In this document: piece after piece, positions 2,344 to 53,820 of the stretch | How positions within the stretch are numbered: the stretch's first letter is position 1 | Layout of the letters: each line of letters opens with the position of its first letter | From: Malacoraja senta | Taxonomy: Eukaryota | NCBI GenBank assembly: GCA_038087875.1 | Contig: JAXLNO010000548.1 | Location: forward strand, 1 to 64,000 | DNA length: 64,000 nucleotides | Direction of reading: 5' to 3' | Translations under genes and position numbers: made by a program | Notes under the pieces: generated by a model | The model's database searches: none | Seen by the model: only the letters and a program-made list of their open reading frames with translations | What the model was told of the DNA's origin: nothing

Positions 2344-2722
2344 ATTCATCCCCAACAACACTGCTCCGGATGGGTCAGTGTCAAGAGCCCTAGCAGGTCT
2401 CACCTCTCTGTCTATCGAATTGGCTGAGAACTCTGGAGTAGACAACTCCTGGACTGGGTTTCTAGAATCCTGGTTTGGGAAATGGAAGCACTGCTTTACC
2501 TCAGCTCTAACATCAGTGGTAGTCATGGTGGGGTTACTGTGTTTGTTCGGATGTTGTATCATTCCCTGCGTACGGGGATTGGCTCAGCGATTGATAGAAA
2601 CAGCCCTGACAAAGAACAGCGCTGCCACCATGATGGCCTTCAGAACACAGTATAACCAACGAGAGGGGGATAGGGAGGCGAAGAATCTGCTGCTAGCATT
2701 AGAAAAGGAGGATATAGTATAA
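2344..2722 (+). pseudogene. env: env TM 3' fragment (copy 1): FIPNNTAPDGS...membrane anchor...cytoplasmic tail
   Basis: In ORF 2294-2722; near-identical to 4886-5263 but with the tail frame intact. Confidence 0.85.
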
Positions 2723-2758
2723 ATCAAAGGTTGCGTAGCAAAAAAGAAAAGGGTGGAT

Positions 2759-3049
2759 TGTGAGGAAAGAGTTAACAGACATGGTTGATTTAGACTAGGG
2801 ATAGAGAAATGGCTTGGGGTGTCAGCAGAAGCCAGACTGCTGGTAAAATAGAAAATAACGATATATAGAACAGAGAGAAATTCTAGATAAAAAGTAGCAA
2901 ATTCAGCAGAAGATTTGAGGAGTAAGTAGAAAGAGAGAAAGTACATAAGGTCAAACATATCTGCGCATGCCTAATGAACTTACATGAATATGTACACACA
3001 CCCACTATGACAAGATGCCTAATTTAAATGCACATGCGATGCATGATAT
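2759..3049 (+). repeat. Truncated LTR (U3 part only)
   Basis: Begins tgtgagg after the PPT 'aaaaaagaaaagggtgga'; matches 5300-5590 and breaks at 'gcatgatat' into pol sequence. Confidence 0.85.
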
Positions 3050-3410
3050 AGAACTAAAAATTAAAGGATTGCTGGCCCAGAGCCCACCACTGGACTTCCC
3101 GATACACTCAGTCAAGGCTGGAGACTGGGTATTAATAAAAACGTGGAAAGAAGAAAAGCTGCAACCTAAGTGGACTGGACCCTACCTGGTGTTACTAATC
3201 ACCGAGACGGCAGTACGGACAAAAGAGAAAGGGTGGACACACGCAAGTCGAGTTAAGGGTCCTGTGGAGGCCCCACCAGACAATATCAGCCCGTGGACTG
3301 TGCGCAAAGGAGAGGAACCATTGACTTTAATATTTACCAAGAACCCGCGGGAAAATGAAGATTTTGTGTTGGTGGGTCGTGTGTTGGGTGGTTACCCAAC
3401 TCGTGAGTAA
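3050..3410 (+). pseudogene. pol: Retroviral pol 3' end (integrase C-terminal GPY/F region)
   Basis: HSVKAGDWVLIKTWKEEKLQPKWTGPYLVLLITETAVRTKEKGWTHASRVK; overlaps the env start by ~56 nt. Confidence 0.85.
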
Positions 3411-4590
3411 TATAACATGTATAAAAATCACAATACCACAGAATAGAAGGCCCACCACCATCCCATTTAATGTATGTAAAAGAAAATGGTGGTGCGGCTA
3501 TAGAATGTATGTATGCACCCATCCCTGTAGAAATTGGCACGCGGTGTTTACTTCATCAAAATATGGGTGGCATCAGCCCACCTATCAAACTGATAGGTGG
3601 AAAATATATCAAAACCCGAACGAGAAATTGCCAGGACGTATATATGTGAGCATACAGAGTGTTCAAATGCAGGAAAGTGGTAGGTATTGGATATGTGCAG
3701 ATAAAACAGGGAAGGACACGTGTCTGAAGTTTGAGATAGAAGTGAAGCGGGATGGGGAGATGGTAAGATACGAGGATAGGGGAAAGGTGTTGAAGATAGA
3801 TGACAGTCAGAATAGGGATCCCGGGGCAACACCAGCACCACCGGTAGTCAGCAAAGTCACCAGGGAGAATGAGTCTAAGGATCTGAAGATAATGATAGTA
3901 GAAGGAGAAACAGGATTAATGCAGTTATATGAGAAGGGAATACCAACAGGGGGAAAAGGAGCCAACACCTGGCTTGCCTGGATGATGTACACAGCCAGAC
4001 ATATGCAACAAACCAATTGTTACACCTGCGCCGGAGCTAGGCCTCAGCTGGTCCCAGTACCATTTCCCCTGAATTGGAATAGAACACCTAGGGCTATGTC
4101 ATGTATACTACAGCTATTCACGAATCCCCTCTTACCAAAGAATGTGATATGCCAGAATTATCATTACCTATTTCCAACCAGCAACAACAATACGAAGGGC
4201 CGAAGGGAAGACCCTCGACCTCCTCCATTTACCAGTCCTCTTGGGGAGGAGGGGTTTGAGTGCTATACAAGAAATAACCCAGAGGGACAGGATATGGGGA
4301 AGGTGCTCAAATGCAATCAGACGTATAACATAACGGCTGAGGAACAGGGACCACTGTTCAATAGCTCCTGGCTGAAAAAGCAGATAGTCAGTAGAGCCGA
4401 TGTCTGGTGGTGGTGCGGGGAGAATACCCTGTGGCCCCGGTTACCGGGGTCATGGACGGGAACCTGTACCCTCACACAACTGATGATGCCCTTCACCATA
4501 GCAGTAGAACATGCTGTAGAACTCAATGACGGAAGCCAACGACAAAAGAGAGGGGTGAAAGGATCATTCGACACACACATATATATATAG
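3355..4590 (+). CDS. env: Env signal peptide + putative Ig-V domain + SU + furin site; stops just after RQKR (411 aa)
   Basis: Hydrophobic N-terminus; N.WLAWMMYTAR..TNCYTCAGARP.L.PVPFPL with a CxxC motif at 4018-4029; RQKR at 4540-4551; TAG at 4588-4590 caused by an extra AT. Confidence 0.85.
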   Translation: MKILCWWVVCWVVTQLVSNITCIKITIPQNRRPTTIPFNVCKRKWWCGYRMYVCTHPCRNWHAVFTSSKYGWHQPTYQTDRWKIYQNPNEKLPGRIYVSIQSVQMQESGRYWICADKTGKDTCLKFEIEVKRDGEMVRYEDRGKVLKIDDSQNRDPGATPAPPVVSKVTRENESKDLKIMIVEGETGLMQLYEKGIPTGGKGANTWLAWMMYTARHMQQTNCYTCAGARPQLVPVPFPLNWNRTPRAMSCILQLFTNPLLPKNVICQNYHYLFPTSNNNTKGRREDPRPPPFTSPLGEEGFECYTRNNPEGQDMGKVLKCNQTYNITAEEQGPLFNSSWLKKQIVSRADVWWWCGENTLWPRLPGSWTGTCTLTQLMMPFTIAVEHAVELNDGSQRQKRGVKGSFDTHIYI

Positions 4591-5263
4591 ATGCGATAGG
4601 GCTGACAAGAGGGGTACCCGATGAATTCAAAGCCAGAAACCAGATAGCTGCGGGCTTTGAGTCCATGCTCTTCTGGTGGTCCACAATTAATAAAAATGTG
4701 GACTGGATCAACTACCTATACTACAATCAACAACGCTTTATAAATTACACTCGAGATGCAGTTGAAGGATTACGGGAACAACTGACAGCTACCAGCCAAA
4801 TAGCCTGGCAAAATCGCATGGCCTTGGACATGCTACCGGCTGAGAAGGGAGGGGTATGTGTAATGTTTGGCGAACAATGTTGCACATTCATCCCCAACAA
4901 CACTGCTCCGGATGGGTCAGTGTCAAGAGCCCTAGCAGGTCTCACCTCTCTGACTATCGAATTGGCTGAGAACTCTGGAGTAGACAACTCCTGGACTGGG
5001 TTTCTAGACTCCTGGTTTGGGAAATGGAAGCACATCTTTACCTCAGCTCTAACAGCAGTGGTAGTCATGGTGGAGTTTCTGTGTTTGTTCGGATGTTGTA
5101 TCATTCCCTGCGTCCGGGGATTGGCTCAGCGATTGATAGAAACAGCCCTGACAAAGAACAGCGTGCCACCATGATGGCCTTCAGAACACAGTATAACCAA
5201 CGAGAGTGGGATAGGGAGGCGAAGAATCTGCTGCTAGCATTAGAAAAGGAAGATATAGTATAA
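4591..5263 (+). pseudogene. env: Env TM subunit in shifted frame (ISD, CX6CC, membrane anchor; further 1-nt deletion near 5163)
   Basis: DAIGLTRGVPDEFKARNQIAAGFES...QNRMALDMLPAEKGGVCVMFGEQCC; copy 1 reads agcgctgcc where this copy reads agcgtgcc. Confidence 0.85.
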
Positions 5264-5299
5264 ATCAAAGGTTGCGTAGCAAAAAAGAAAAGGGTAGAT

Positions 5300-5857
5300 T
5301 GTGAGGAAAGAGTTAACAGACATGGTTGATTTAGACTAGGGATAGAAAAATGGCTTGTGGTGTCAGCAGAAGCCAGACTGCTGGTAAAATAGAAAATAAT
5401 GACATATAGAACAGAGGGAGAAATTCTAGATAAAAAGTAGCAAATTCAGCAGAAGATTTGAGAAGTAAGTAGAAAGGGAGAAAGTACATAAGGTCAAACA
5501 TATCTGCGCATGCCTAATGAACTTACATGAATATGTACACACAGCCACTATGACAAGATGCCTAATTTAAATGCACATGCGATGCATGATATGGGAGGTG
5601 TCTTTGATGTCGGGTGGACGTTCCAGGACGTTCTCGTGGGAATGTGGGCTTTATGTTATGATTGGAAGAAGCACAATGGGGAGGGATGAGGGTGTGACAA
5701 TGATACCCATGAAATGTATAAAGATAGAAGACATCCCGATCCTCGGTGTGCCTCTAGGGGACATCAGAGGAGGCACCTATTCTGCAGAATATGATTTAAA
5801 TAAAAAGCTTCTTTGCCGACTTTGTCTCTAAAAGCGTTTGTGATTTTGCATCTCACA
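5300..5857 (+). repeat. Complete 3' LTR (558 bp)
   Basis: tgtgag...ctcaca 6-bp terminal inverted repeat; PPT immediately upstream; TATA-like 'gtataaag' ~5716; aataaa ~5798. Confidence 0.85.
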
Positions 5858-15644: not shown

Positions 15645-15845
15645 ATGGAGACAAGAAGGAAAGGAGGATCCCCAAAGAAGGAACTGGGGAAAAGCCACAA
15701 CCACAGCTGCAGCTTCTGATTCCAGCATCATAGAAGCAATATCGAAAATGAACGATGAATTGAAAAATGAGCTGAAAAATGAAATGAAAACAAGATTTGG
15801 CAGTTTGGAAGAAATGGTGAAAGGAGTTTCGACCAAATTAGAAAC
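15645..15845 (+). pseudogene. N-terminus of L1/Tx1 ORF1, separated from the rest by a CR1 insertion
   Basis: ATG at 15645; coiled-coil ...ISKMNDELKNELKNEMKTRFGSLEEMVKGVSTKLE joins in sequence to 'actttgaaggaagtcc' at 18405. Confidence 0.65.
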
Positions 15846-18407
15846 ATAGAAACATAGAAAATAGGTGCAGGAGTAGGCTATTCGGCCCTTCGAGCCTGCA
15901 CCGCCATTCAATATGATCATGGCTGATCATCCAACTCAGTATCCTGTACCTGCCTTCTCTCCATACCGCCTGATCCCTTTAGCCACAAGGGCCACATCTA
16001 ACTCCCTCTTAAATATAGCCAATGAACTGGCCTCAACTACCTTCTGTGGCAGAGAGTTCCAGAGATTCACCACTCTCTGTGTGAAAAAAAAATTCTCATC
16101 TCGGTCCTAAAGGATTTCCCCTTAATCCTTAAACTGTGACCCCTTGTCCTGGACTTCCCCAACATTGGGAACAATCTTCCTGCATCTAGCCTGTCCAACC
16201 CCTTAAGAATTTTGTACGTTTCTATAAGATCCCCCCTCAATCTTCTAAATTCTAGCGAGTACAAACCGAGTCTATCCAGTCTTTCTTCATATGAAAGTCC
16301 TGACATCCCAGGAATCAGTCTGGTGAACCTTCTCTGTACTCCCTCTATGGCAAGAATGTATTTCCTCAGATTAGGAGACCAAAACTGTACGCAATACTCC
16401 AGGTGTGGTCTCACCAAGACCCGGTACAACTGCAGTAGAACCTCCCTGCTCCTATACTCAAATCCTTTTGCTATGAATGCTAACATACCATTCGCCTTCT
16501 TCACTGCCTGCTGCACCTGTATGCCTACTTTTAATGACTGGTGTACCATGACACCCAGGTCTCGTTGCATCTCCCCTTTTCCTAATCAGCCACCATTCTG
16601 ATAATAGTCTACTTTCCTGTTTTTGCCGCCAAAGTGGACAACCTCACATTTATTCACATTATACTGCATCTGCCATGCATTTTCCCACTCAACCAGCCTA
16701 TCCAAGTCACCTTGCAGCCTCCGAGCATCCTCCTCACAGCTAACACTGCCCCCCAGCGATGTGTCATCCGCAAACTTGGAGATGTTGCATTCAATTCCCT
16801 CGTCCAAATCATTAATATATATCGTAAATAGCTGGGGTCCCAGCACTGAGCCATAGCGGTACCCCACTAATCACTGCCTGCCATTGTGTAAAGGACCCGT
16901 TTACTCCTACGCTTTGCTTCCTGTATGCCAGCCAGTTCTCTATCCACATCAATACTGAACCCCCAATACCGTGTGCTTTAAGTTTGTATACTAATCTCTT
17001 ATGTGGGACCTAGTCGAAAGCCTTCTGAAAGTCCAGATATAACACATCCACTCGTTCTCCCTTATCCACTCTACTAGTTACATCCTCGAAAAATTCTATA
17101 AGATTCGTCAGACATGATTTACCTTTCATAAATCCATGCTGACTTTGTCCAATGATTTCACCACTTTCCAAATGTGCTGCTATCCCATCTTTAATAACTG
17201 ATTCTAGCAGTTTCCCCACTACCGACGTTAGACTAACTGGTCTGTAATTCCCCGTTTTCTCTCTCCCTCCCTATTTAAAAAGTGGGGTTACATTAGCTAC
17301 CCTCCAATCCTCAGGAACTACTCCAGAATCTAAAGAGTTTTGAAAAATTATCACTAATGCATTCACTATTTCTGGGGCTACTTCCTTAAGTACTCTGGGA
17401 TGCAGCCTATCTGGCCCTGGGGATTTATCGGCCTTTAATCCATTCAATTTACCTAACACCACTTCCCGGCTAACCTGGATTTCACTCAGTTCCTCCATCT
17501 CATTTGACCCCCAGTCCCCTGCTATTTCCGGCAGATTATTTATGTCTTCCTTATTGAAGACAGAACCAAAGTTGTTATTCAATTGGTCTGCCATGTCCTT
17601 GTTCCCCATGATCAATTCACCTGTTTCTGACTGCAAGGGACCTACATTTGTTTTAACTAATCTTTTTCTCTTCACATATCTATAAAAGCTTTTGCAGTCA
17701 GTTTTTATGTTCCCTGCCAGTTTTCTTTCATAATCTATTTTCGCTTTCCTAATTAAGCCCTTTGTCCTCCTCTGCCGGACTCTGAATTTCTCCCAGTCCT
17801 CTGGTAGGCTGCTTTTTCTGGCTAATTTGTACGCTTCATCTTTTGTTTTGATACTATCCCTGATTTCCCTTGTTATCCACGGATGCACTACCTTCCCTGA
17901 TTTATTTTTTTGCCAAACTGGGATGAACAATTGTTGTAGTTCATCCATGCAGTCTTTAAATGCCTTCCATTGCATATCTACCGTCAACCCATTAATAATC
18001 AATTGCCAGTCTATCTTGGCCAATTCACTTCTCATACCCTCAAAGTTACCTTTCTTTAAGTTCAGGACCTTTGTTTCTGAATTAACAATGTCACTCTCCA
18101 TCCTAATGAAGAACTCAACCATATTATGGTCACTCTTGCCCAAGGGGCCACGCACAACAAGACTGCTAATTATCCCTTCCTCATTACTCAATACCCAATC
18201 TAGAATAGCCTGCTCTCTCGTTGGTTCCTCTACATGTTGGTTTAGAAAACTATCCCGCATACATTCCAAGAAATCCTCTTCCTCAGCACCCCTGCCAATT
18301 TGATTCACCCAATCTATATGTAGATTGAAGTCACCCATTATAACTGTTTTACCTTTGTTGCACGCATTTCTAATTTCCTGTTTGATGCCATCCCCAACTC
18401 CACTACT
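15846..18407 (-). mobile_element. 5'-truncated, disabled CR1 LINE
   Basis: APE C-terminus and RT split over ORFs 17271-18422, 17010-17219, 16586-16867, 16067-16570; (ctatgttt)n tail at 15840-15860. Confidence 0.92.
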
Positions 18408-21400: not shown

Positions 21401-23888
21401 ATTGTATATACAGCGTCTAATAAAACCCCAGAAAGTGTCATCTCACTTGATGCCGAGAAGGCTATTGATAGAGTAGAATGGAATACTTATTCAATATACT
21501 TGAAAAAGTTAAGATTGGTCCAAAATTTATCTCTTGGATCAAACTGCTATATCTTATACCTCAGGCTTCTGTATTTACTGATAATCAGAGATCCCCCTTT
21601 TTCAGGCTCTTTCAAGGTACGAGACAGGGCTGTCCCTTAAGTCCTTTACTATTTGATATTGCTTTGGAAACCTTAGCCACTGCTATTAGGGAATCCCCTA
21701 ATATTTTTGGTATTGTCCGCGGGAATAAGACACATAAGCTATCTCTTTATGCAGATGATCTGTTATTATTTATTTCTAACCCTGAGAAATCTATTCCGGC
21801 AATAGTAGCATTACTTAATCAATTCAGTAGTTTTTCTGGTTATAAACTAAATCTTAGTAAGAGTGAGCTTTCCCATTATATAATTTTGTTTCGAGTTATG
21901 GACAGTTTCCATTTAGATTGACTACCGAAAGTTTTACTTATTTAGGTATTAAGATCACCAAGAAACACAAGGATTTATTTAAAGCTAATTTTATTCCTTT
22001 AATTGACCATATTAAACATCAGTTCACTAAATGGTCACCAATGTCCTTATCCTTAATTGGCCGAATCAATACTATTAAAATGTTCATTTTACCTAAATTT
22101 CTGTATTTATTTCAGACGATACCAATTTTTATTGCCAAATCTTTCTTTGATATTATAGATCTAAAATTTCTTCATATATATGGCAGAATAAAAATGCCAG
22201 ACTAGGTAAAAAATACCTACAGAAATCAAAAAAAGTTGGTGGTTTGGCATTGCCGAACCGTAGACTATACTATTGGTCAGTCAATGTTCGTTATTTAACA
22301 TTTTGGACAAAAGATTTAGAAGATACCCAATGCCCTGGATGGATAAACCTAGAACGTGATTCCTTACAAGGGCTATAATTGGCTTCTATTCTAGGGACCT
22401 CGTTACCTTTTACAATTACGAGATTGAATAAATATATGACGAACCCAATAATAAGACATACGTTCCGAATACGGTTTCAATTTCATAAGTTTTTTGGACT
22501 ATCTGATGTTATCCAAATTTCTCTTCCAACCATCTAGTACTGATCAAGTTTTTTTGTTATGGAAGAGGAAGGGATTAGTAGCTTTTCGTGATTTGTTTTT
22601 GGAGGGTTGTTTTATGTCTTTCGAACAACTCTCCAATAAATATAACTTACCTAATTCACACTTTTTTAGATATTTACAAATTAGACAAAAGGAACTACCT
22701 CTTTTTCCGCTACCACATCAACCCGAAATTTTGGATTTTTTTTTACAGTTGAACCCTTATCAGAAAGGATTAATAACGACTATTCATGAGTTGATTTTAA
22801 AATTACAAATAGATACATTTGATAAAATTAAGAATGACTGGGAAAGAGAACTCCAAATTTCTTTATCTATAGAGAAATGGGAGAGGATCCTTCAATTAGT
22901 TAATACCTCTTCAATGTGTGCAAGACACACTTTGATACAATTGAAGGTGGTTCACAGAGCTCATATGTCAAAAGATAAGTTAGCTCGTTTTTATGGTCAT
23001 ATAAATCCTACCTGTGACAGATGTAACTCTGAAGTGGCATCACTGACCCATATGTTTTGGTCCTGCCCTCTTTTGGAAAAATATTGGAAATAAATTTTTG
23101 ATACTATTTCGGTAGTCTTAGGTATAGATTTACAACCTCATCCTATTACTGCAATTTTTGGGTTACCAATGTTAGATTCTATTCATTTGTCCCACTCCAC
23201 CCATCGGTTGATTGCTTTTACCACATTAATTGCCAGAAGATTTATTTTCATTAAATGGAAAGATTCCAACCCTCCGACCACACTCCAGTGGTATTCTGAA
23301 ACGATATCATGTTTAAATTTAGAAAAAATCAGGTGACATTGTTGAACCCTTGGTTAAATTTGATAAGACTTGGGGAAAATTTATTGAACACTTTCATACA
23401 ACATAAATTGTTCCCTCTTTAACCGTTATAAAAATTACTTTACCTTCATAGAGTGGAACGGACTTGACGACAAACAGACTTAAATTGTTGAATTTCTCAG
23501 TTCAGATTCGGGTTTGCTCTGTTTTGTTTTTATTTATTTATTTTATTTTTATTCTTATTTTATTATTATCCAATTTTTTAAATTTTTTTTTAGTTTAGGG
23601 GGGTTTTGTTTTTTGTTTTTCTTTTTGTCTTTTTATCTTTGCTTTTTTTTTACATTTATGTTTCCTTTTAAAGATTTAACTATATTTACATAGAGATGGA
23701 GAGGTCTATATTCATTGGGTATTTTGACACTGGTCTCATATTAGTTTATACCTGTTATTAATGTAATCCTGATCCCTATGTATCAATACCATTGTTATGT
23801 TTATCATTATTCTTTTTGCTCTGTTTTTTATGTTTTATTTTTGTTTTTGTTTTTTGGAAAAAAAACAATAAAAAGATTTTAAAAGAAA
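18405..23888 (+). mobile_element. Near full-length, multiply frameshifted L1/Tx1-type LINE
   Basis: ORF1 (ENRSRHLNLRIVGL, HRIG, PRHLIIRF) to 19042; ORF2 from 19660 (SWNVNGLN APE; SLDAEKA; GTRQGCPLSP; YADD; CDRC..LTHMFWSCP zinc knuckle); T-rich 3' UTR and A-rich tail. Confidence 0.9.
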
Positions 23889-32618: not shown

Positions 32619-35600
32619 ACATAGATACATAGATACATAGAAATTAGTTGCAGGAGTAGGCCATTCGGCCCTTCGAGCCTGCACCGCCATTCAATACGAT
32701 CATGGCTGATCATCCAACTCAGTATCCCGTACCTGCCTTCTCTCCATACCCCCTGATCCCTTTAGCCACAAGGGCCACATCTAATTCCCTCTTAAATATA
32801 GCCAATGAACTGGCCTCAACTACCCTCTGTGGCAGAGAGTTCCTGAGATTCACCACTCTCTGTGTGAAAAAGTTTTTCCTCATCTCGGTCTTAAAGGATT
32901 TTCCCCTTATCCTTAAGCTGTGACCCCTTGTCCTGGACTTCCCCAACATCGGGAACAATCTTCCTGCATCTAGCCTGTCCAACCCCATTAGAATCTTGTA
33001 CGTTTCTATAAGATCCCCTCTCAATCTCCTAAATTCTAGCGAGTATAAGCCAAGTCTATCCAGTCTTTCTTCATATGAGAGTCCTGACATCCCAGGAATC
33101 AGTCTGGTGAACCTTCTCTGCACTCCCTCTATGGCTATAATGTCCTTCCTCAGATTTGGAGACCAAAACTGTACGCAATACTCCAGGTGTGGTCTCACCA
33201 AGACCCTGTACAACTGCAGTAGAACCTCACTGCTCCTATACTCAAATCCTCTTGCTATGAAGGCCAACATACCATTCGCTTTCTTCACTGCCTGCTGCAC
33301 CTGCATGCCTACTTTCAATGACTGGTGTACCATGACACCCAGGTCTCGCTGCATCTCCCCATTTCCTAATCGGCCACCATTTAGATAATAGTCTGCCTTC
33401 CCGTTTTTGCTACCAAAGTGGATAACCTCACATTTATCCACATTATACTGCATCTGCCAAACATTTGCCCACTCACCCAGCCTATCCAAGTCACCTTGCA
33501 GTCTCCTAGCATCCTCCTCACAGCTAACACTGCCCCCCAGCTTAGTGTCATCCGCAAACTTGGAGATGTTGCTTTCAATTCCCTCGTCCAGATCATTAAT
33601 ATAAATTGTAAATAGCTGGGGTCCCAGCACTGAGCCTTGTGGTACCCCACTAGTCACTGCCTGCCATTGTGAAAAGGACCCGTTTACTCCTACTCTTTGC
33701 TTCCTGTTTGCCAGCCAGTTCTCTATCCACATCAATACTGAACCCCCAATACCGTGTGATTTAAGTTTGTATCCTAATCTCTTATGTGGTACCTTGTCGA
33801 AAGCCTTCTGAAAGTCCAGATACAACACATCCACTGGTTCTCCCCTATCCACTCTACTAGTTACATCCTCGAAAAATTCTATAAGATTCGTCAGACACGA
33901 TTTACCTTTCGTAAATCCATGCTGACTTTGTCCAATGATTTCACCACTTTCCAAATGTGCTGCTATCCCATCTTTAATAACTGACTCTAGCAGTTTCCCC
34001 ACTACCGATGTTAGACTAACTGGTCTGTAATTCCCCGTTTTCTCTCTCCCTCCCTTCTTAAAAAGTGGGGTTACGTTTGCTACCCTCCAATCCTCAGGAA
34101 CTACTCCAGAATCTAAAGAGTTTTGAAAAATTATCACTAATGCATCCACTATTTCTGGAGCTACTTCCTTAAGTACTCTGGGATGCAGCCTATCTGGCCC
34201 TGGTGATTTATCGGCCTTTAATCCATTCAATTTACCCAACACCACTTCCCGACTAACCTGGATTTCACTCAGTTCCTCCATCTCCTTTGACCCGCGGCCC
34301 CCTGCTATTTCCGGCAGATTATTTATGTCTTCCTTAGTGAAGACGGAACCAAAGTAGTTATTCAATTGGTCTGCCATATCCTTGTTCCCCATGATCAATT
34401 CACCTGTTTCTGACTGCAAGGGACCTACATTTGATTTAACTAATCTCTTTCTCTTCACATATCTATAAAAACTTTTGCAGTCAGTTTTTATGTTCCCTGC
34501 CAGTTCCCTTTCATAATCTATTTTCCCTTTCCTAATTAAGCCCTTTGTCCTCCTCTGCTGGTCTCTGAATTTCTCCCAGTCCTCTGGTATGCTGCTTTTT
34601 CTGGCTAATTTGTACGCATCATCTTTTGCTTTGATACTATCCCTGATTTCCCTTGTTATCCACGGATGCACTACCTTCCTTGATTTATTCTTTTGCCAAA
34701 CTGGGATGAACAATTTTTGTAGTTCATCCATGCAGTCTTTAAATGCCTTCCATTGCATATCCACCGTCAACCCTTTTAGAACTAATTGCCAGTCAATCTT
34801 GGCCAATTCATGTCTCATACCCTCAAAGTTACCTTTCTTTAAGTTCAGAACCGTTGTTTCTGAATTAACAATGTCACTCTCCATCCTAATGAAGAACTCA
34901 ACCATATTATGATCACTCTTGCCCAAGGGGGCACGCACAACGAGTCTGCTAACTAACCCTTCCTCATTACTCAATACCCAGTCTAGAATAGCCTGCTCTC
35001 TCGTTGGTTCCTCTACATGTTGGTTTAGATAACTATCCCTCATACATTCCAAGAAATCCTCTTCCTCAGCACCCCTGCCAATTTGATTCACCCAATCTAT
35101 ATGTAGATTGAAGTCACCCATTATAACTGTTTTGCCTTTGTTGCACGCATTTCTAATTTCCTGTTTGATGCCATCCCCAACTTCACTACTACTGCTAGGT
35201 GGCCTGTACACAACGCCCAGCAGCGTTTTCTGCCCCTTAGTGTTTCGCAGCTCTACCCATACCGATTCCACATCCTCCAAGCTAATGTCCTTCCTTTCCA
35301 CTGCGTTAATCTCCTCTCTAACCAGCAACGCCACCCCACCTCCTTTTCCTTTCTCTCTATCCCTCCTGAATATTGAATATCCCTGGATGTTCAGCTCCCA
35401 GCCTTGGTCACCTTGGAGCCATGTCTCCGTGATCCCAACTATATCATAATCATTAATTGCTATCTGCACGTTCAACTCATCCACCTTATTACGAATGCTC
35501 CTTGCATTGAGACACAAAGCCTTCAGACTTGTTTTTACAACGCTCTTACCCCTTATACAATTATGTTGAAAAGTGGCTCTTTTTGATTTTTGTCCTGGAT

Positions 35601-35895
35601 TTGTCTGCCTGCCACTTTTACCTTTCACCTTGCTACCTATTGCTTCCGCCCGCATTTTACACCCCTCTGTTTCTCTGCTCACCCATTTAAGAACCCCACC
35701 ACCTCTTATTCTCTGTTTATTATTGTTTTCTTCTTTCCCCCCTACATGTTGGGTCTGAGTGCTTTCCTTCTCTGCCTCCTGCCTCACACACTGTCTAATA
35801 GCATTCTCTATTTGAGTCCCTCCCCCCAACCATTCTAGTTTAAAGTCTCCCCAGTAGCCTTTGCAGATCTCCCCGCCAGGATATCGGTCCCCCTC
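32619..35895 (-). mobile_element. Young CR1 LINE, 5'-truncated in the last codons of ORF1
   Basis: (ctatgtat)n tail at 32619-32640; ORF1 C-terminus GTDILAGRSAKATGETLN* near 35840-35895; uninterrupted ORF2. Confidence 0.95.
32719..35655 (-). CDS. Intact CR1 ORF2 (APE endonuclease + reverse transcriptase)
   Basis: No stop over 1064 codons; first ATG at 35655; LNARSIRNK, VGITETW, MGDFN, SDHN, YLDFQKAFD, GVPQGSVLGP, FADD. Confidence 0.9.
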   Translation of the reverse strand: MRAEAIGSKVKGKSGRQTNPGQKSKRATFQHNCIRGKSVVKTSLKALCLNARSIRNKVDELNVQIAINDYDIVGITETWLQGDQGWELNIQGYSIFRRDREKGKGGGVALLVREEINAVERKDISLEDVESVWVELRNTKGQKTLLGVVYRPPSSSSEVGDGIKQEIRNACNKGKTVIMGDFNLHIDWVNQIGRGAEEEDFLECMRDSYLNQHVEEPTREQAILDWVLSNEEGLVSRLVVRAPLGKSDHNMVEFFIRMESDIVNSETTVLNLKKGNFEGMRHELAKIDWQLVLKGLTVDMQWKAFKDCMDELQKLFIPVWQKNKSRKVVHPWITREIRDSIKAKDDAYKLARKSSIPEDWEKFRDQQRRTKGLIRKGKIDYERELAGNIKTDCKSFYRYVKRKRLVKSNVGPLQSETGELIMGNKDMADQLNNYFGSVFTKEDINNLPEIAGGRGSKEMEELSEIQVSREVVLGKLNGLKADKSPGPDRLHPRVLKEVAPEIVDALVIIFQNSLDSGVVPEDWRVANVTPLFKKGGREKTGNYRPVSLTSVVGKLLESVIKDGIAAHLESGEIIGQSQHGFTKGKSCLTNLIEFFEDVTSRVDRGEPVDVLYLDFQKAFDKVPHKRLGYKLKSHGIGGSVLMWIENWLANRKQRVGVNGSFSQWQAVTSGVPQGSVLGPQLFTIYINDLDEGIESNISKFADDTKLGGSVSCEEDARRLQGDLDRLGEWANVWQMQYNVDKCEVIHFGSKNGKADYYLNGGRLGNGEMQRDLGVMVHQSLKVGMQVQQAVKKANGMLAFIARGFEYRSSEVLLQLYRVLVRPHLEYCVQFWSPNLRKDIIAIEGVQRRFTRLIPGMSGLSYEERLDRLGLYSLEFRRLRGDLIETYKILMGLDRLDAGRLFPMLGKSRTRGHSLRIRGKSFKTEMRKNFFTQRVVNLRNSLPQRVVEASSLAIFKRELDVALVAKGIRGYGEKAGTGY

Positions 35896-36574
35896 AGACT
35901 TGGACTTAAGCAAAAAAGGGTTCTTGGGGGAAAAAAACTACCTTAAATTTAGTTGCGTCTGGTTGGGTACCTATAGTAGGGTGACAACTATTCCATGCTT
36001 TAATTGTGCGGGGGAACTCCATGGAGCAGCCAGCATCTCTGGATAGAAAAAATTGGGTGACATTTCTGGTAGAAACCCTTCTTTACATTTCCTCTGGTTT
36101 TAGTGTGTTTAGTTTAATTTAAAGATACAGTGTGGAAGCAGGCCCTTCGGCCCACTGAGTCCACGCCGACCACCGATCACCCGTACTCTAGTTCTATCCC
36201 ACACATCAGCAACGTAAGTCAAGACTGTTTTATTCTCTCACGTCCCAGTTAGAACAATGAAATCCTCACTTGCAGCAGCACAACAGAATATGTAAACATA
36301 GTACTCTGTAAACAATGTTATAAACGAGAAAACAAAACTCCACACAGACAGCACCCATATTCAGGATCAATTCTGGGTCTCTGGCAATATTAGGCAGCCA
36401 ATTTATGGGCAATGTACTGCCCCAATATCCTTGAACTGATTTAAGCATACAGTAGCTGTAAAGTGGGACATAGCGTCACTTAGAGATTTAAGACTGAAAA
36501 TGGATAGTTTCTTTTTTTTAGTAACCAAAGTTATCAACGTATAATTTTTTGTGTGTTGGAAAATAAAATATAAT

Positions 36575-36798: not shown

Positions 36799-37247
36799 TA
36801 GACACAAATGCTGGAAAAACTCAGCAGGTGAGGCAGCATCTATGGAGCAAAGGAAAAAGGTGACGTTTCGGGTCGAGACCCTTCTTCAGACTGATGTCGG
36901 GAGGGGTGGGGGGCGAAAAAGAAAGGAAGAGGCAGAGACAGTAGGGTGTGGGAGAGCTGAGAATGGGAGGCAGGGGGAGGGAGAAAGCAAGGACTATCTG
37001 AAATTGGAGAAGCCAATGTTCATACCGCTGGGGTGTAAACTACCCAAGCAAAATATGAGGTGCTGTTCCTCCAATTTGCGGTGGGCCTCACTCTGGCCAT
37101 GGAGGAGGCCCAGAACAGAAAGGTCGGATTCGGAATGGGAGGGGGAGTTGAAGTGCTGAGCCACCAGGAGATCAAGTTGGTTATTGCGAACTGAGTGGAG
37201 GTGTTGTGCGAAGCGATCGCCATGCCTGCGCTTGGTCTCACCGAGGT
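36799..37247 (-). mobile_element. Penelope-like element 3' fragment (GIY-YIG C-terminus + terminal repeat)
   Basis: GETKRRHGDRFAQHLHSVR...VAQHFNSPSHS...KLEEQHLIFCLGSLHPSGMN. Confidence 0.85.
36858..36896 (-). ncRNA. Minimal hammerhead ribozyme motif in the Penelope terminal repeat
   Basis: cagu-CUGAAGA-a-GGGUC-uc-GACCC-GAAA-C-GUC-acc: intact core, perfect stem II, palindromic ACGU stem III. Confidence 0.7.
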
Positions 37248-43014: not shown

Positions 43015-43830
43015 AGAAAGAACTGCAGATGCTGCAGATGTTAAAATCGAAGAGAGACACAAAATGCTGGCGTAACTCAGCGGGTCAGGCAGCTTCCCTG
43101 GAGAGATGGAATGGGCATCGTTTTGGGTCGAGACCCTTCTTCATACTGATGTCAGGGGAGGGACAAAGATAGAATGTCGGCGGAGACAGTAAGACTGGTG
43201 GGAGAATTGGGAAGGGGGAGGGGATGGAGAGAGAAATCAAGGGCTATCGAAAGTTATAGAAGTCAATGTTCATACCGCTGGAGTATAGGCTACCAAAGCG
43301 AAATATGAGGTGCTGTTCCTCCAATTTGTGCTGGGCCACACTCTGACAATGGAGGAGGCCCAGAACAGAAAGGTCAGATTGGGAATGGGAGGGGGAGTTG
43401 AAGTGCTGAGCCACCGGGAGATCGGGTAGGGTAAGACGGACTGAGGGGAAGTGTTCAGCAAAACGATCGCCGAGCCTGCGCTTGGTCTCACTGATGTAGA
43501 GAAGTTGACAACTGAAACAGTGGATACAGTAGATGAGGTTGGAAGAGGTGCAAGTGAACTTCTGCCTCACCTGGAAAGACTTTTGGTCCTTGGACGGAGT
43601 CGAGGGGGGACGTAAAGGGACAGGTGTTGCATCTCCGGCGGTTGCAGGGGAAAGTAGCCGGGGAGCGGGTGGTTTGGGTGTGAAGGGACAAGTTGACATG
43701 GGAGTTTCGGAGGGAACGGTCTCTGCGGAAAGCAGAAAGGGGTGGAGATGGGAAGATGTGATCAGTAGTGGGATCCCGTTGGAGGTGGCAAAAATGATGG
43801 AGGATTTTATGATGTACGTACTATTAATAG
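43015..43830 (-). mobile_element. Penelope-like element 3' portion (GIY-YIG endonuclease + terminal repeat)
   Basis: QKFTCTSSNLIYCIHCFSCQLLYISETKRRLGDRFAEH...HFNSPSH...KLEEQHLIFRFGSL. Confidence 0.88.
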
Positions 43831-50284: not shown

Positions 50285-50882
50285 TTACTTAGATGATTCA
50301 TTCCCTCTGGCATTGATTGATGAATCAAAGTGGGGGGGGGGGGGGGGTGATGGAATTTGTAAGGATTTGCTGAAGTCAGTTTGCTTAAAACTGCTCACTC
50401 CTTGAAAAGGAGAGTCTGTGAACTTTAGCCCAGACAAAGAACAGTTTGTGAACTCAAGGTTATAACTGATAAAAACCTAGGCACAACTGTGAACAACAAC
50501 CCTTTATTAGGATGAAGGTAATGAGCTAATGCCAACCATTCCCCTGGGACCAGGAGTAACAAGGAAGGGTCAAAACTTGGATGATGTTTTCATTCCAATA
50601 AGAAACTCTACAAACAATGATAGCTGAATAAAACATACTTATGTTGTATAGATGAAGAGCCTCCTTTTCAAGCTGCTTTCTGCAGTCTTTTAGTTGTTCT
50701 GCAGATCCTTTACATTCTCTCATTTTCGTGTTTTCAAGAAACACCACAATTAGCCGAATGTATACTAATTATAGAAACATAGAAAAATAGGCACAGGAAT
50801 AGGCCATTCGGCCATTTGAGCCAGCACCGCCATTCAATATGATCATGCCTGCATCTAGAATCAGTAACCCATTCCTGCTTTT

Positions 50883-52076
50883 AGAAACATAGAAACACAG
50901 AATATAGTTGCAGGAGAAGGCCATTCGGCCCTTCGAGCCTGCACCGCCATTCAATATGATCATGGCTGATCATCCAACTCAGTATCCCGTACCTGCCTTC
51001 TCTCCATACCCCCTGATCCCTTTAGCCACAAGGGCCACATCTAATTCCCTCTTAAATATAGCCAATGAACTGGCCTCAACTACCCTCTGTGGCAGAGAGT
51101 TCCAGAGATTCACCACTCTCTGTGTGAAAAAGTTTTTCCTCATCTCGGTCTTAAAGGATTTCCCCCTTATCCTTAAGCTGTGACCCCTTGTCCTGGACTT
51201 CCCCAACATCGGGAACAATCTTCCTGCATCTAGCCTGTCCAACCCCATAAGAATTTTGTACGTTTCTATAAGATCCCCTCTCAATCTCCTAAATTCTAGC
51301 GAGTATAAGCCAAGTCTATCCAGTCTTTCTTCATATGAAAGTCCTGACATCCCAGGAATCAGTCTGGTGAACCTTCTCTGCACTCCCTCTATGGCTATAA
51401 TGTCCTTCCTCAGATTTGGAGACCAAAACTGTACGCAATACTCCAGGTGTGGTCTCACCAAGACCCTGTACAACTGCAGTAGAACCTCCCTGCTCCTATA
51501 CTCAAATCCTCTTGCTATGAAGGCCAACATACCATTCGCTTTCTTCACTGCCTGCTGCACCTGCATGCCTACTTTCAATGACTGGTGTACCATGACACCC
51601 AGGTCTCGCTGCATCTCCCCATTTCCTAATCGGCCACCATTTAGATAATAGTCTGCCTTCCCGTTTTTGCTACCAAAGTGGATAACCTCACATTTATCCA
51701 CATTATACTGCATCTGCCAAACATTTGCCCACTCACCCAGCCTATCCAAGTCACCTTGCAATCTCCTAGCATCCTCCTCACAGCTAACACTGCCCCCCAG
51801 CTTAGTGTCATCCGCAAACTTGGAGATGTTGCTTTCAATTCCCTCGTCCAGATCATTAATATAAATTGTAAATAGCTGGGGTCCCAGCACTGAGCCTTGC
51901 GGTACCCCACTAGTCACTGCCTGCCATTGTGAAAAGGACCCGTTTACTCCTACTCTTTGCTTCCTGTTTGCCAGCCAGTTCTCTATCCACATCAATACTG
52001 AACCCCCAATACCGTGTGATTTAAGTTTGTATCCTAATCTCTTATGTGGTACCTTGTCGAAAGCCTTCTGAAAGTC
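50883..52076 (-). mobile_element. CR1 3' fragment, near-identical to the 32.6-kb copy
   Basis: ORF 50979-52118 matches the C-terminal ~360 aa of ORF 32719-35913 almost exactly; (ctatgttt) tail. Confidence 0.92.
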
Positions 52077-53820
52077 TTCGAGCCTGCACCGCCATTCAAT
52101 ATGATCATGGCTGATCATCCAACTCAGTATCCTGTACCTGCCTTCTCTCCATAACCCCTGATCCCTTTAGCCACAAGGGCCACATCTAACTCCCTCTTAA
52201 GTATAGCCAATGAACGGGCCTCAACTACATTCCGTGGCAGAGAATTCCAGAGATTCACCACTCTCTGTGTAAAAAATGTTTTTCTCATCTCAGTCCTAAA
52301 AGATTTCCCCTTTATCCTTAAACTGTGACCCCTTGTTCTGGACTTCCCCAAAATCGGGAACAATGTTCCTGCATCTAGCCTGTCCAACCCCTTAAGAATT
52401 TTGTAAGTTTCTATAAGATCCCCCCTCAATCTTCTAAATTCTAGCGAGTACAAGCCGAGTCTATCCAGTCTTTCTTCATATGAAAGTCCTGACATCCCAG
52501 GAATCAGTCTGGTGAACCTTCTCTGTACTCCCTCTATGGCAAGAATGTCCTTCCTCAGATTAGGAGACCAAAACAGTAGGCAATACTCCAGGTGTGGTCT
52601 CACCAAGACCCTGAACAACTGCAGTAGAACCTCCCTGCTCCTCAAATCCTTTTGCTATGAATGCTAACATACCATTCGCTTTCTTCACTGCCTGCTGCAC
52701 CTGCATGCCTACTTTCAATGACTGGTGTACCATGACACCCAGGTCTCGTTGCATCTCCCGTTTTCCTAATCGGCCACCATTCAGGTAATAGTCTACTTTC
52801 CTGTTCTTGCCACCAAAGTGGATAACCACACATTTATCCACATTATACTGCATCTGCCATGCATTTGCCCACTCACCCAGGCTATCCAAGTCACCTTGCA
52901 GCCTCCTAGTACCCTCCTCACAGCTAACACTGCCCCCCAGCTTCGTGTCATCCGCAAACTTGGAGATGTTGCATTCAATTCCCTCGTCCAAATCATTAAT
53001 ATATATTGTAAATAGCTGGGGTCCCAGCACTGAGCCTTGCGGTACCCCACTAGTCACTGCCTGCCATTCTGAACCCGTTTACTCCTACTCTTTGCTTCCT
53101 GTCTGCCAGCCAGTTCTCTATCCACATCAATACTGAACCCCCAATACCGTGTGCTTTAAGTTTGTATATTAATCTCTTATGTGGGACCTTGTCGAAAGTC
53201 TTCTGAAAGTCCAGATATAACACATCCACTGGTTCTCCCTTATCCACTCTACTAGTTACATCCTCGAAATTTTTTATAAGATTCGTCAGACATGATTTAC
53301 CTTTCATAAATCCATGCTGACTTTGTCCAATGATTTCACCATTTTCCTAATGTGCTGCTATCCCATCTTTAATAACTGACTAGCAGTTTCCCACTACCGA
53401 TGTTAGACTAACTGGTCTGTAATTCCCCGTTTTCTCTCTCCCTCCCTTTTTAAAAAGTGGGGTTACATTAGGTACCCTCCAATCCTCAGGAACTACTCCA
53501 GAATCTAAAGAGTTTTGAAAAATTATCATTAATGCATCCACTATTTCTGGGGCTACTTCCTTAAGTACTCTGGGATGCAGCCTATCTGGCCCTGGGGATT
53601 TATCGGCCTTTAATCCATTCAATTTACCTAACACCACTTCCCGGCTAACTTGGATTTCACTCAGTTCCTCCATCTCATTTGAGCCCCGGTCCCCTGCTAT
53701 TTTCGGCAGTTAATTAAGTCTTCCTTAGTGAAGACAGAACCAAAGTAGTTATTCAATTGTTCTGCCATGACCTTGTTCCCCATGATCAATTCAACTGTTT
53801 CTGACTGCAAGGGACCTACA
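52077..53820 (-). mobile_element. Older, internally deleted CR1 fragment abutting the younger copy
   Basis: RT split over ORFs 53380-53673, 53050-53307, 52560-53057, 52124-52645. Confidence 0.88.

Follow-up and report, generated by a model that had tools for sequence, protein, structure and literature searches.

The window analysed here comprises 64,000 nucleotides of the skate Malacoraja senta (GenBank assembly GCA_038087875.1, contig JAXLNO010000548.1, positions 1 to 64,000) and contains, close to its beginning, the env gene of a gamma-type endogenous retrovirus (ERV). Translation of the + strand from the ATG at 3355 yields a signal peptide, an N-terminal domain, a hinge, a C-domain with a CXXC motif, a furin-type cleavage site and the transmembrane subunit (TM), and reproduces the Env residues quoted in the initial annotation of this stretch. 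In that annotation the segment 3421–3744 was described as a V-type immunoglobulin (Ig) domain of the CD300/pIgR kind, captured from a host by this provirus. The segment falls within the receptor-binding domain (RBD) of the surface subunit (SU), a Cys-rich, predicted all-β domain of ~115 residues (Env residues ~19–133) with cysteines at positions 22, 41, 47, 54, 58, 114 and 123. This domain is most likely the ordinary RBD of the lineage, a compact member of the EnvP(b)1 (type-C gammaretroviral) type and, judged from its sequence, it probably keeps the trace of an ancient origin from a host V-set domain of the CD300/pIgR type.

The protein is assigned to the gamma-type Envs because it carries the CXXC motif, an immunosuppressive domain (ISD)-like motif, the CX6CC motif and the furin-type site, and because its TM matches the Pfam family TLV_coat (PF00429) with 42.9 bits against a cut-off of 22.5. 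A Pro-rich stretch does follow the N-terminal domain and leads to a normal gamma-type SU, as had been described. The RBD thus occupies the place between the signal peptide and the hinge and CXXC domain of a gamma-type SU. Comparison with the intact natural relative P0003 reveals two frame changes, both in the TM-coding part, so that SU and TM are not encoded in a single frame, and no in-frame stop within the aligned env pieces. The reading frame for SU, with the flagged domain in it, stays open from the ATG up to and including the furin-type site. Because of the two frameshifts in TM, and because the locus is a rearranged fragment without gag or most of pol, the window copy cannot make a full Env.

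Similarity to CD300/CMRF35-like V domains

The RBD was compared by phmmer with 1.84 billion representative protein sequences and, besides the domain's own family, three fish V-set proteins were returned. The rainbow-trout protein P0007 (O. mykiss), which contains a single V domain, is matched in one stretch with 37.5 bits and an E-value of 1.6e-4, showing 35% identity over 82 amino acids, and its close relatives are annotated as CMRF35-like molecule 1 or 2. The other two are multi-domain fish proteins, P0006, annotated as CMRF35-like molecule 3 of Silurus, and P0005, a five-domain protein of a wrasse; both reach their scores by the summing of weak repeats, and little weight is therefore placed on them alone. 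Three bacterial Reg_prop propeller proteins appeared at similar E-values and were rejected as artefacts, their scores being sums of 6–9 repeats of which the best gives 16.8 bits. Since P0005, P0006 and the propeller proteins all score by repeat summation, P0007 is the real statistical anchor of the similarity. No chondrichthyan protein is present among the matches of this search, the best cellular ones being from teleosts.

A profile of 14 teleost CD300-like V domains gives the window domain 41 bits, while the best of 5000 shuffled sequences reaches 13. When the profile is divided, the non-salmonid host sequences give 37.5 bits and the salmonid ones 33 bits. The part that aligns with the host domains, residues ~48–133, corresponds to strands C–G and includes a C-x3-C pair, the E-strand/SG.Y motif and the D..G.D loop between strands F and G (FG loop). 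Columns C38, C42, D100 and D105 (domain numbering) are common to the window RBD and the salmonid proteins. The C-x3-C pair, positioned after strand C, aligns with the Cys pair of the fish CD300-like V domains and is invariant in every Env RBD compared. The resemblance to CD300/CMRF35-like V domains is, on these scores, more than chance, and the specific likeness to the fish proteins reported earlier, with the extra Cys pair and FG loop of the CD300 type, is borne out.

The teleost CD300/CMRF35-like V domains (P0007, CMRF35-like molecule 2 of Salmo trutta and molecule 3 of Silurus) share 35% identity with the window domain over strands C–G and have in common with it the C-x3-C pair, the E-strand/DSG.Y motif and the D..G.D FG loop. 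However, the host proteins reach the Pfam V-set family and keep the disulfide between strands B and F, while the window domain does neither. The host proteins also continue into a stalk, a membrane anchor and a signalling tail, whereas the window domain is fused to a viral SU. Neither the architecture of a cellular receptor nor the context of a host gene is found at this locus, as the RBD lies inside the env frame, downstream of a pol remnant.

The arrangement of the cysteines differs in part from that proposed at the outset, where both canonical positions were taken to be replaced, by F38 and Ile113. This is correct for the F strand, and the F-strand Cys is missing in other Env RBDs too. The B-strand Cys, on the other hand, is probably kept as C47, whose equivalence to the B-strand position is seen in alignment A3; F38 was rejected for this position because the alignments of Env RBDs point to C47, with C41 as its partner. 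The canonical B–F disulfide as such is absent. Compensation by other Cys pairs, also suggested earlier, is plausible: both C41/C47 and C54/C58 are retained by related Env RBDs, while C114 and C123, which close the F–G hairpin, occur together only in the window family and are kept in every one of its copies.

Comparison with other Env RBDs

Three further Envs, from the cave brotula Lucifuga dentata (locus L008), from a provirus in the Logan assemblies (L004) and from Gymnodraco (L010), were found through the homology of their TM, independently of any Ig similarity, and the DNA upstream was then fetched. The N-terminal domains of all three possess the same skeleton of cysteines, tryptophans and FG loop as the window RBD. 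L004 and L010 have longer loops and give no CD300-like score. Against the host profile the L008 RBD reaches 30 bits (best shuffle 7.9). Of the Envs analysed it alone gives any match to Pfam V-set, although this match is below threshold (16.7 bits, E 0.0084). An alignment of the window, L002, L008 and L004 domains contains 17 invariant columns. Differences in RBD length fall in the BC and DE segments, and the skate domain has the shortest of these, far below the lengths seen in L004, L008 and L010.

A search of the PDB with the RBD profile A2 retrieves the RBD of human EnvP(b)1 (PDB code 6W5Y) at an E-value of 1.7e-18, and the next matches are V-set chains at 0.09–0.4, CMRF35-like molecule 1 (CLM-1) among them. 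With L004 removed from the profile, the non-artefact PDB matches are all V-set domains or 6W5Y; matches to designed TIM barrels were rejected as artefacts. Chained links between the Env RBDs were tested against 2000 shuffles: the L008 profile finds the window domain with 22.9 bits (best shuffle 12.7), that of the window and L008 finds L004 with 29.3 bits (best shuffle 16.1), and that of L004 and L010 finds L008 with 16.2 bits (best shuffle 10.9). In hhalign comparisons with the alignment of host V domains, the probability is 98.2% for the window and L008 together, 96.5% for L008 alone and 87.6% for the Env alignment without the window family.

Residues W45, V48, G55-W56, K104 and F110 (domain numbering) are specific for Env RBDs and are common to the three Env lineages. 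Because these residues sit inside the host-like segment in all three, the Env RBDs are one family and not the products of separate captures.

The structure of the EnvP(b)1 RBD was solved by McCarthy et al. 2020 and has a β-sandwich core similar to the V-type Ig fold; the RBDs of Friend murine leukaemia virus (FrMLV) and feline leukaemia virus (FeLV) are built on the same scaffold, and gamma RBDs have a conserved 8-residue loop between the last two strands (PMC7683403). The IgStrand paper assigns the topology of a V-type Ig domain (IgV) to both 6W5Y and 1AOL, with variable region A (VRA) as the BC loop and variable region B (VRB) as the DE loop (PMC12051499). These structures contradict the premise of the initial annotation that gamma-type RBDs are not Ig V-folds, and its proposal that this provirus exchanged a normal RBD for a captured module does not stand, given the common skeleton in the Lucifuga, Logan and Gymnodraco Envs and the match to 6W5Y.

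The skate domain and the EnvP(b)1 RBD are both N-terminal in a gamma-type SU, ahead of the hinge and the CXXC motif, and have in common the Cys, Trp and FG-loop skeleton, the core of EnvP(b)1 being a V-type Ig-like sandwich. The skate domain is shorter, ~115 residues as opposed to ~150, with minimal BC and DE loops, and its FG hairpin is closed by an additional Cys pair that the EnvP(b)1 RBD does not have. It keeps a detectable CD300-like similarity, which the EnvP(b)1-like RBDs L004 and L010 lack. With the FrMLV and FeLV-B RBDs (1AOL and 1LCS), for which the sequence searches returned no match, the likeness described in the literature is one of scaffold, with IgV topology, and of the conserved loop that joins the last two strands (PMC7683403, PMC12051499); these RBDs have long VRA and VRB insertions and an extra N-terminal strand, unlike the skate domain.

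Structure models

AlphaFold run on the single sequence gave a model with a pLDDT (predicted local distance difference test) of 39, which is unusable. With alignment A4, in which the window domain is joined by two family fragments and six salmonid host proteins, pLDDT rose to 52 with a predicted template modelling score (pTM) of 0.50, and the model places strands C, C', C'', D, E, F and G in the V-domain arrangement. Its N-terminal 32 residues are unmodelled and it contains no helix of at least 4 residues. The central helix and the VRA/VRB decoration of a type-C RBD are not seen in this low-confidence model, and in the sequence alignments the BC and DE segments are short.

Comparison of the model with the PDB by Foldseek places CD300lf at the top with an E-value of 7e-3, and no match reaches E≤0.001; the template modelling scores are 0.47–0.65 for CD300lf/TREM2, with 0.57–0.65 for TREM2. 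Since host proteins dominate alignment A4, this support is weak and partly circular. Against BFVD, Foldseek matched nothing but generic Ig-like proteins of DNA viruses, and no retroviral Env was among them.

The skate ERV family and the wider Env clade

The protein XP_055496023.1 of Leucoraja erinacea, which is in the 90%-identity cluster of P0003, is 91–92% identical to the C-terminal part of the window SU and to TM. At least 19 open-reading-frame (ORF) fragments of the same SU are present in the Logan assemblies, five of them beginning at the same Met, and every Cys of the RBD is kept in all family copies wherever it is covered. By these identities, the window Env belongs to an endogenous retrovirus family of skates. 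A further member, L015 (Logan SRR13269309, positions 3–2930), is ~95% identical to the window and contains an open pol of 975 amino acids, with reverse transcriptase (RT), RNase H and integrase, which runs into env; some copies of the family are therefore far less degraded than that in the window.

The TM of an intact family member, used as a query, retrieved 617 Env fragments from sharks, teleosts, frogs, birds and human. Among the 120 listed matches, which include the horn shark, geese and other birds, many teleosts, frogs and a human protein, the identity is 50–73%. The host spread is unusually wide for one Env clade. The human protein P0024, which belongs to the same clade and whose identity as EnvP(b)1 is not confirmed, is ~59% identical in TM. 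A metagenome scan with the RBD profile found no relative.

In Lucifuga dentata (GCA_014773175.1), locus L008 contains at 804–2885 an intact gamma-type env of 693 amino acids, which could be a recent integration or a co-opted gene. In Channa striata, locus L009 (3788–5363) encodes an Env in which the signal peptide leads straight to the CXXC domain, without an N-terminal RBD. It resembles the RBD-less percomORF-type Envs and is of the same TM and C-domain family as the window Env, which differs from both in having a modular N-terminal RBD. A neighbour-joining tree of TM sequences does not show whether Lucifuga and the window family are sisters, and in TM distance L008 and the L004-type Envs are equally close to the window family.

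Origin and probable role of the domain

The proposed ancestor of the entire RBD family is a V-set domain of the CD300/pIgR type from a host. The compact RBDs of the skate and Lucifuga lineages would have evolved slowly and diverged least, while the EnvP(b)1-like RBDs would have gained loop insertions and lost the CD300-like signal. The skate RBD has very short equivalents of the variable loops, BC for VRA and DE for VRB. As the best matches are teleost proteins of ~35% identity, no chondrichthyan protein is found and the host is a skate, the domain seems to have travelled with the virus and not to have come from its present host.

By analogy with its Env family, the domain is predicted to form the head of SU that binds the receptor. 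Its place in a working Env would be the membrane-distal end of SU, with a flexible hinge connecting it to the CXXC C-domain, which would be disulfide-bonded to TM; binding of a receptor by the RBD would then lead to isomerization involving CXXC and CX6CC and to TM-driven fusion. The role raised in the initial annotation, binding of phospholipid or immunoglobulin ligands or an immune decoy, is pure speculation.

A wider and more tentative proposal is that the RBDs of type-C gamma-type Envs, EnvP(b)1 and, by scaffold, those of MLV and FeLV, began as a single CD300/pIgR-type V-set domain captured from a fish-like host, which is possible but doubtful on the present data. If true, the compact RBDs of the skate and Lucifuga would be slowly evolved relics, the first to show the capture origin at the level of sequence, with the family-specific Cys pair and FG loop intact, and VRA and VRB would be the expanded equivalents of the loops for complementarity-determining region 1 (CDR1) and hypervariable region 4 (HV4).

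Several observations weigh against descent from a CD300-type domain, or against the link of the compact RBD to EnvP(b)1. Strands A and B, the first ~30 residues, fall outside the alignment with the host V domains, and the canonical F-strand Cys column is occupied by Ile113, the Cys following one residue later. Pfam V-set (PF07686, cut-off 26 bits), proposed earlier as a check, gives no match to the window domain even at E≤10, and the PDB sequence search with the domain alone returns no match, 6W5Y included. The host V profile was built from sequences picked by the search itself. Without L004, profile matches in the PDB fall to E-values of 0.053 for 6W5Y, 0.07 for CLM-1 and 0.02 for Siglec-7, which indicates that the link to 6W5Y is partly carried by L004. 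The profile of L004 and L010 gives the window domain 5.5 bits, below the shuffles, and in hhalign reaches 0.8% against the host V alignment; since these two RBDs miss the window domain and have no CD300-like signal, the link from CD300 to EnvP(b)1 is transitive. The only usable structural model is of low confidence, and its matches to CD300lf and TREM2 are partly circular because the alignment behind it is dominated by host V domains. The ratio dN/dS between family copies is 0.43–0.5 in the RBD and 0.8–1.5 elsewhere, but with only 16–20 changes per comparison (2–9 between two Logan copies) it is uninformative.

An alternative is a mosaic RBD, in which strands C–G of an ancestral EnvP(b)1-type domain were replaced or gene-converted by a teleost-like host CD300/CMRF35-like V exon in the lineage of skate and Lucifuga. 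The host-like signal is confined to residues ~48–133, the N-terminal part matching only Env RBDs, and the trout V domain (37 bits, 35%) is a nearer match to the window domain than any Env RBD (L008 22.9 bits; L004 not significant). The absence of CD300-like signal in L004 and L010 and the teleost origin of the best cellular matches despite the skate host are in line with such an exchange. However, the segment supposed to have been replaced contains Env-specific residues that L004 shares, the Cys pair and FG-loop skeleton is retained in both L004 and 6W5Y, TM distances put the window family equally near to the L004-type Envs and to L008, and 35% identity is low for a recent exchange, which together make re-acquisition unlikely. 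Equally improbable is that there is no specific kinship with CD300 at all, the domain being a diverged RBD of IgV topology whose likeness reflects convergence or a generic V-set signal drawn from a very large database. The domain falls short of Pfam V-set and lacks the canonical disulfide, its PDB matches to CLM-1, Siglec-7, T-cell receptor (TCR) and light-chain V domains are uniformly weak, with similar values (E 0.02–0.3), and repeat-sum artefacts attained comparable E-values in the same phmmer search. Against this, the single-stretch E-value for P0007 is already corrected for the 1.84 billion targets, two independent teleost host groups each exceed 30 bits, and L008, though found independently of Ig similarity, reaches 30 bits and has the sole Pfam V-set match. 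Moreover, every named cellular match is a CD300/CMRF35-like protein, even though V domains of Ig and TCR far outnumber these, and the family-specific C-x3-C pair and FG loop coincide column by column.

Far less probable than either is the original proposal, a recent capture of a host CD300/pIgR-like V domain by this provirus or its immediate family, replacing a non-Ig RBD. In its favour are only the likeness in sequence and the compact size of the domain, while the same skeleton occurs in teleost ERV Envs and human EnvP(b)1, gamma-type RBDs are IgV-like already, no skate or shark protein is among the matches and the best identity is ~35%. In addition, the RBD diverges between family copies at the rate of the rest of SU, the shared residues being 0.89 and 0.86, respectively. 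A compact EnvP(b)1-type RBD with a trace of ancient CD300/pIgR-type descent therefore remains the preferred reading. A capture at the env position is known from the crocodilian ERV CrocERV31, which acquired nectin3 (Chong et al. 2014, PMC4299795) and has host Ig-superfamily domains at the position of env. In CrocERV31 a whole host mRNA, with three Ig domains and ~76% identity to the host gene, replaced env, whereas in the skate a single V-like domain, only ~35% identical to any host protein, belongs to a functional-type Env as an old, integral component.

The origin of the modular RBD of gamma-type Envs has so far been without an explanation at the sequence level, since structures show only an IgV-like topology, and a literature search found no report of a sequence link between gamma-type RBDs and the CD300/pIgR type or any cellular family. 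Compact RBDs that score against one host V-set family turn “Ig-like by shape” into a testable hypothesis of descent, and they offer a minimal scaffold for understanding the variable receptor-binding loops of MLV-like viruses. What is new is a compact member of a known RBD family that still resembles fish CD300-type receptors, the IgV-like fold being known already. The evolutionary implication is moderately interesting and awaits structural and phylogenetic confirmation. For annotation the outcome is modest: a degraded env fragment of a skate ERV, in which the flagged domain is an ordinary RBD.

Surroundings of the env gene

The features of the env gene and of its immediate surroundings are listed in Table 1. 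From pol only the C-terminal domain of integrase is left, and gag and the remainder of pol are absent from the window. Two copies of a 706-bp direct repeat, 96–97% identical, flank the segment made of the pol remnant, SU and the N-terminal part of TM, and the similarity between them stops at 5592. The upstream copy adjoins the pol remnant at 3049/3050 and long interspersed nuclear element (LINE) sequence on its other side, and homology to L015 begins exactly at window position 3050. The arrangement looks like a partial tandem duplication or an internally deleted proviral pair that shares a long terminal repeat (LTR). With pol reduced to ~120 codons, the 706-bp repeat and the L015 homology starting at 3050, the locus is a rearranged, partly duplicated proviral fragment beside LINE sequence.

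Table 1. Features of the env locus in the Malacoraja senta window
Feature	Position	Strand	Basis or remark
Upstream copy of 706-bp direct repeat	2344..3049	+	C-terminal half of TM, TM tail, purine tract 2740–2753, ~300 bp LTR-like
pol remnant, integrase C-terminal domain only (last ~120 codons)	3050..3410	+	Pfam MLVIN_C 42.6 bits; overlaps env start
env gene, gamma-type ERV, broken	3355..5263	+	Translations, TLV_coat, break count against P0003
Signal peptide (putative)	3355..3408	+	Hydrophobicity and position; five Logan family ORFs begin at same Met
RBD, compact IgV-like, EnvP(b)1 type with CD300/CMRF35-like features	3409..3753	+	
C-x3-C pair (Env C54, C58) after strand C	3514..3528	+	Alignments A1, A2, A3
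F–G hairpin, conserved D..GKD loop, closed by family-specific C114/C123	3694..3723	+	
Hinge from RBD to C-domain	3754..4017	+	Short Pro-rich stretch at 3817–3849
CXXC motif, start of SU C-domain	4018..4029	+	Aligns with CXXC of related Envs
Furin-type SU/TM cleavage motif R-x-K-R	4540..4551	+	Same place in intact relative P0003
TM ectodomain core	4809..4883	+	ISD-like motif 4809–4835, CX6CC 4857–4883
Downstream copy of 706-bp direct repeat	4886..5592	+	C-terminal half of TM, tail, purine tract 5281–5294, LTR-like
TM membrane anchor	5046..5105	+	

Directly upstream of the truncated TM copy, a LINE-type RT (RVT_1 with an ALKBH8_N-like tail) occupies 770–2343, and this LINE may have interrupted an older env copy. 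The remainder of the window is LINE-rich. One LINE family is present at 15839–17511, 32622–35913 and 50882–53686, its copies being 81–100% identical over most 300-nt blocks and 64% in one. One LINE copy contains an open ORF2 of 1063 amino acids with endonuclease and RT domains (32719–35913, minus strand), which, together with the identity between the copies, suggests recent LINE activity in the region. The segment 20001–24000 is AT-rich, with a GC content of 0.31–0.32 compared with ~0.44 elsewhere, and includes an ORF with a zf-RVT match at 22494–23093. A two-copy direct repeat, 83% identical, is located at 36948–37247 and 43198–43497, its copies lying 6.25 kb apart.

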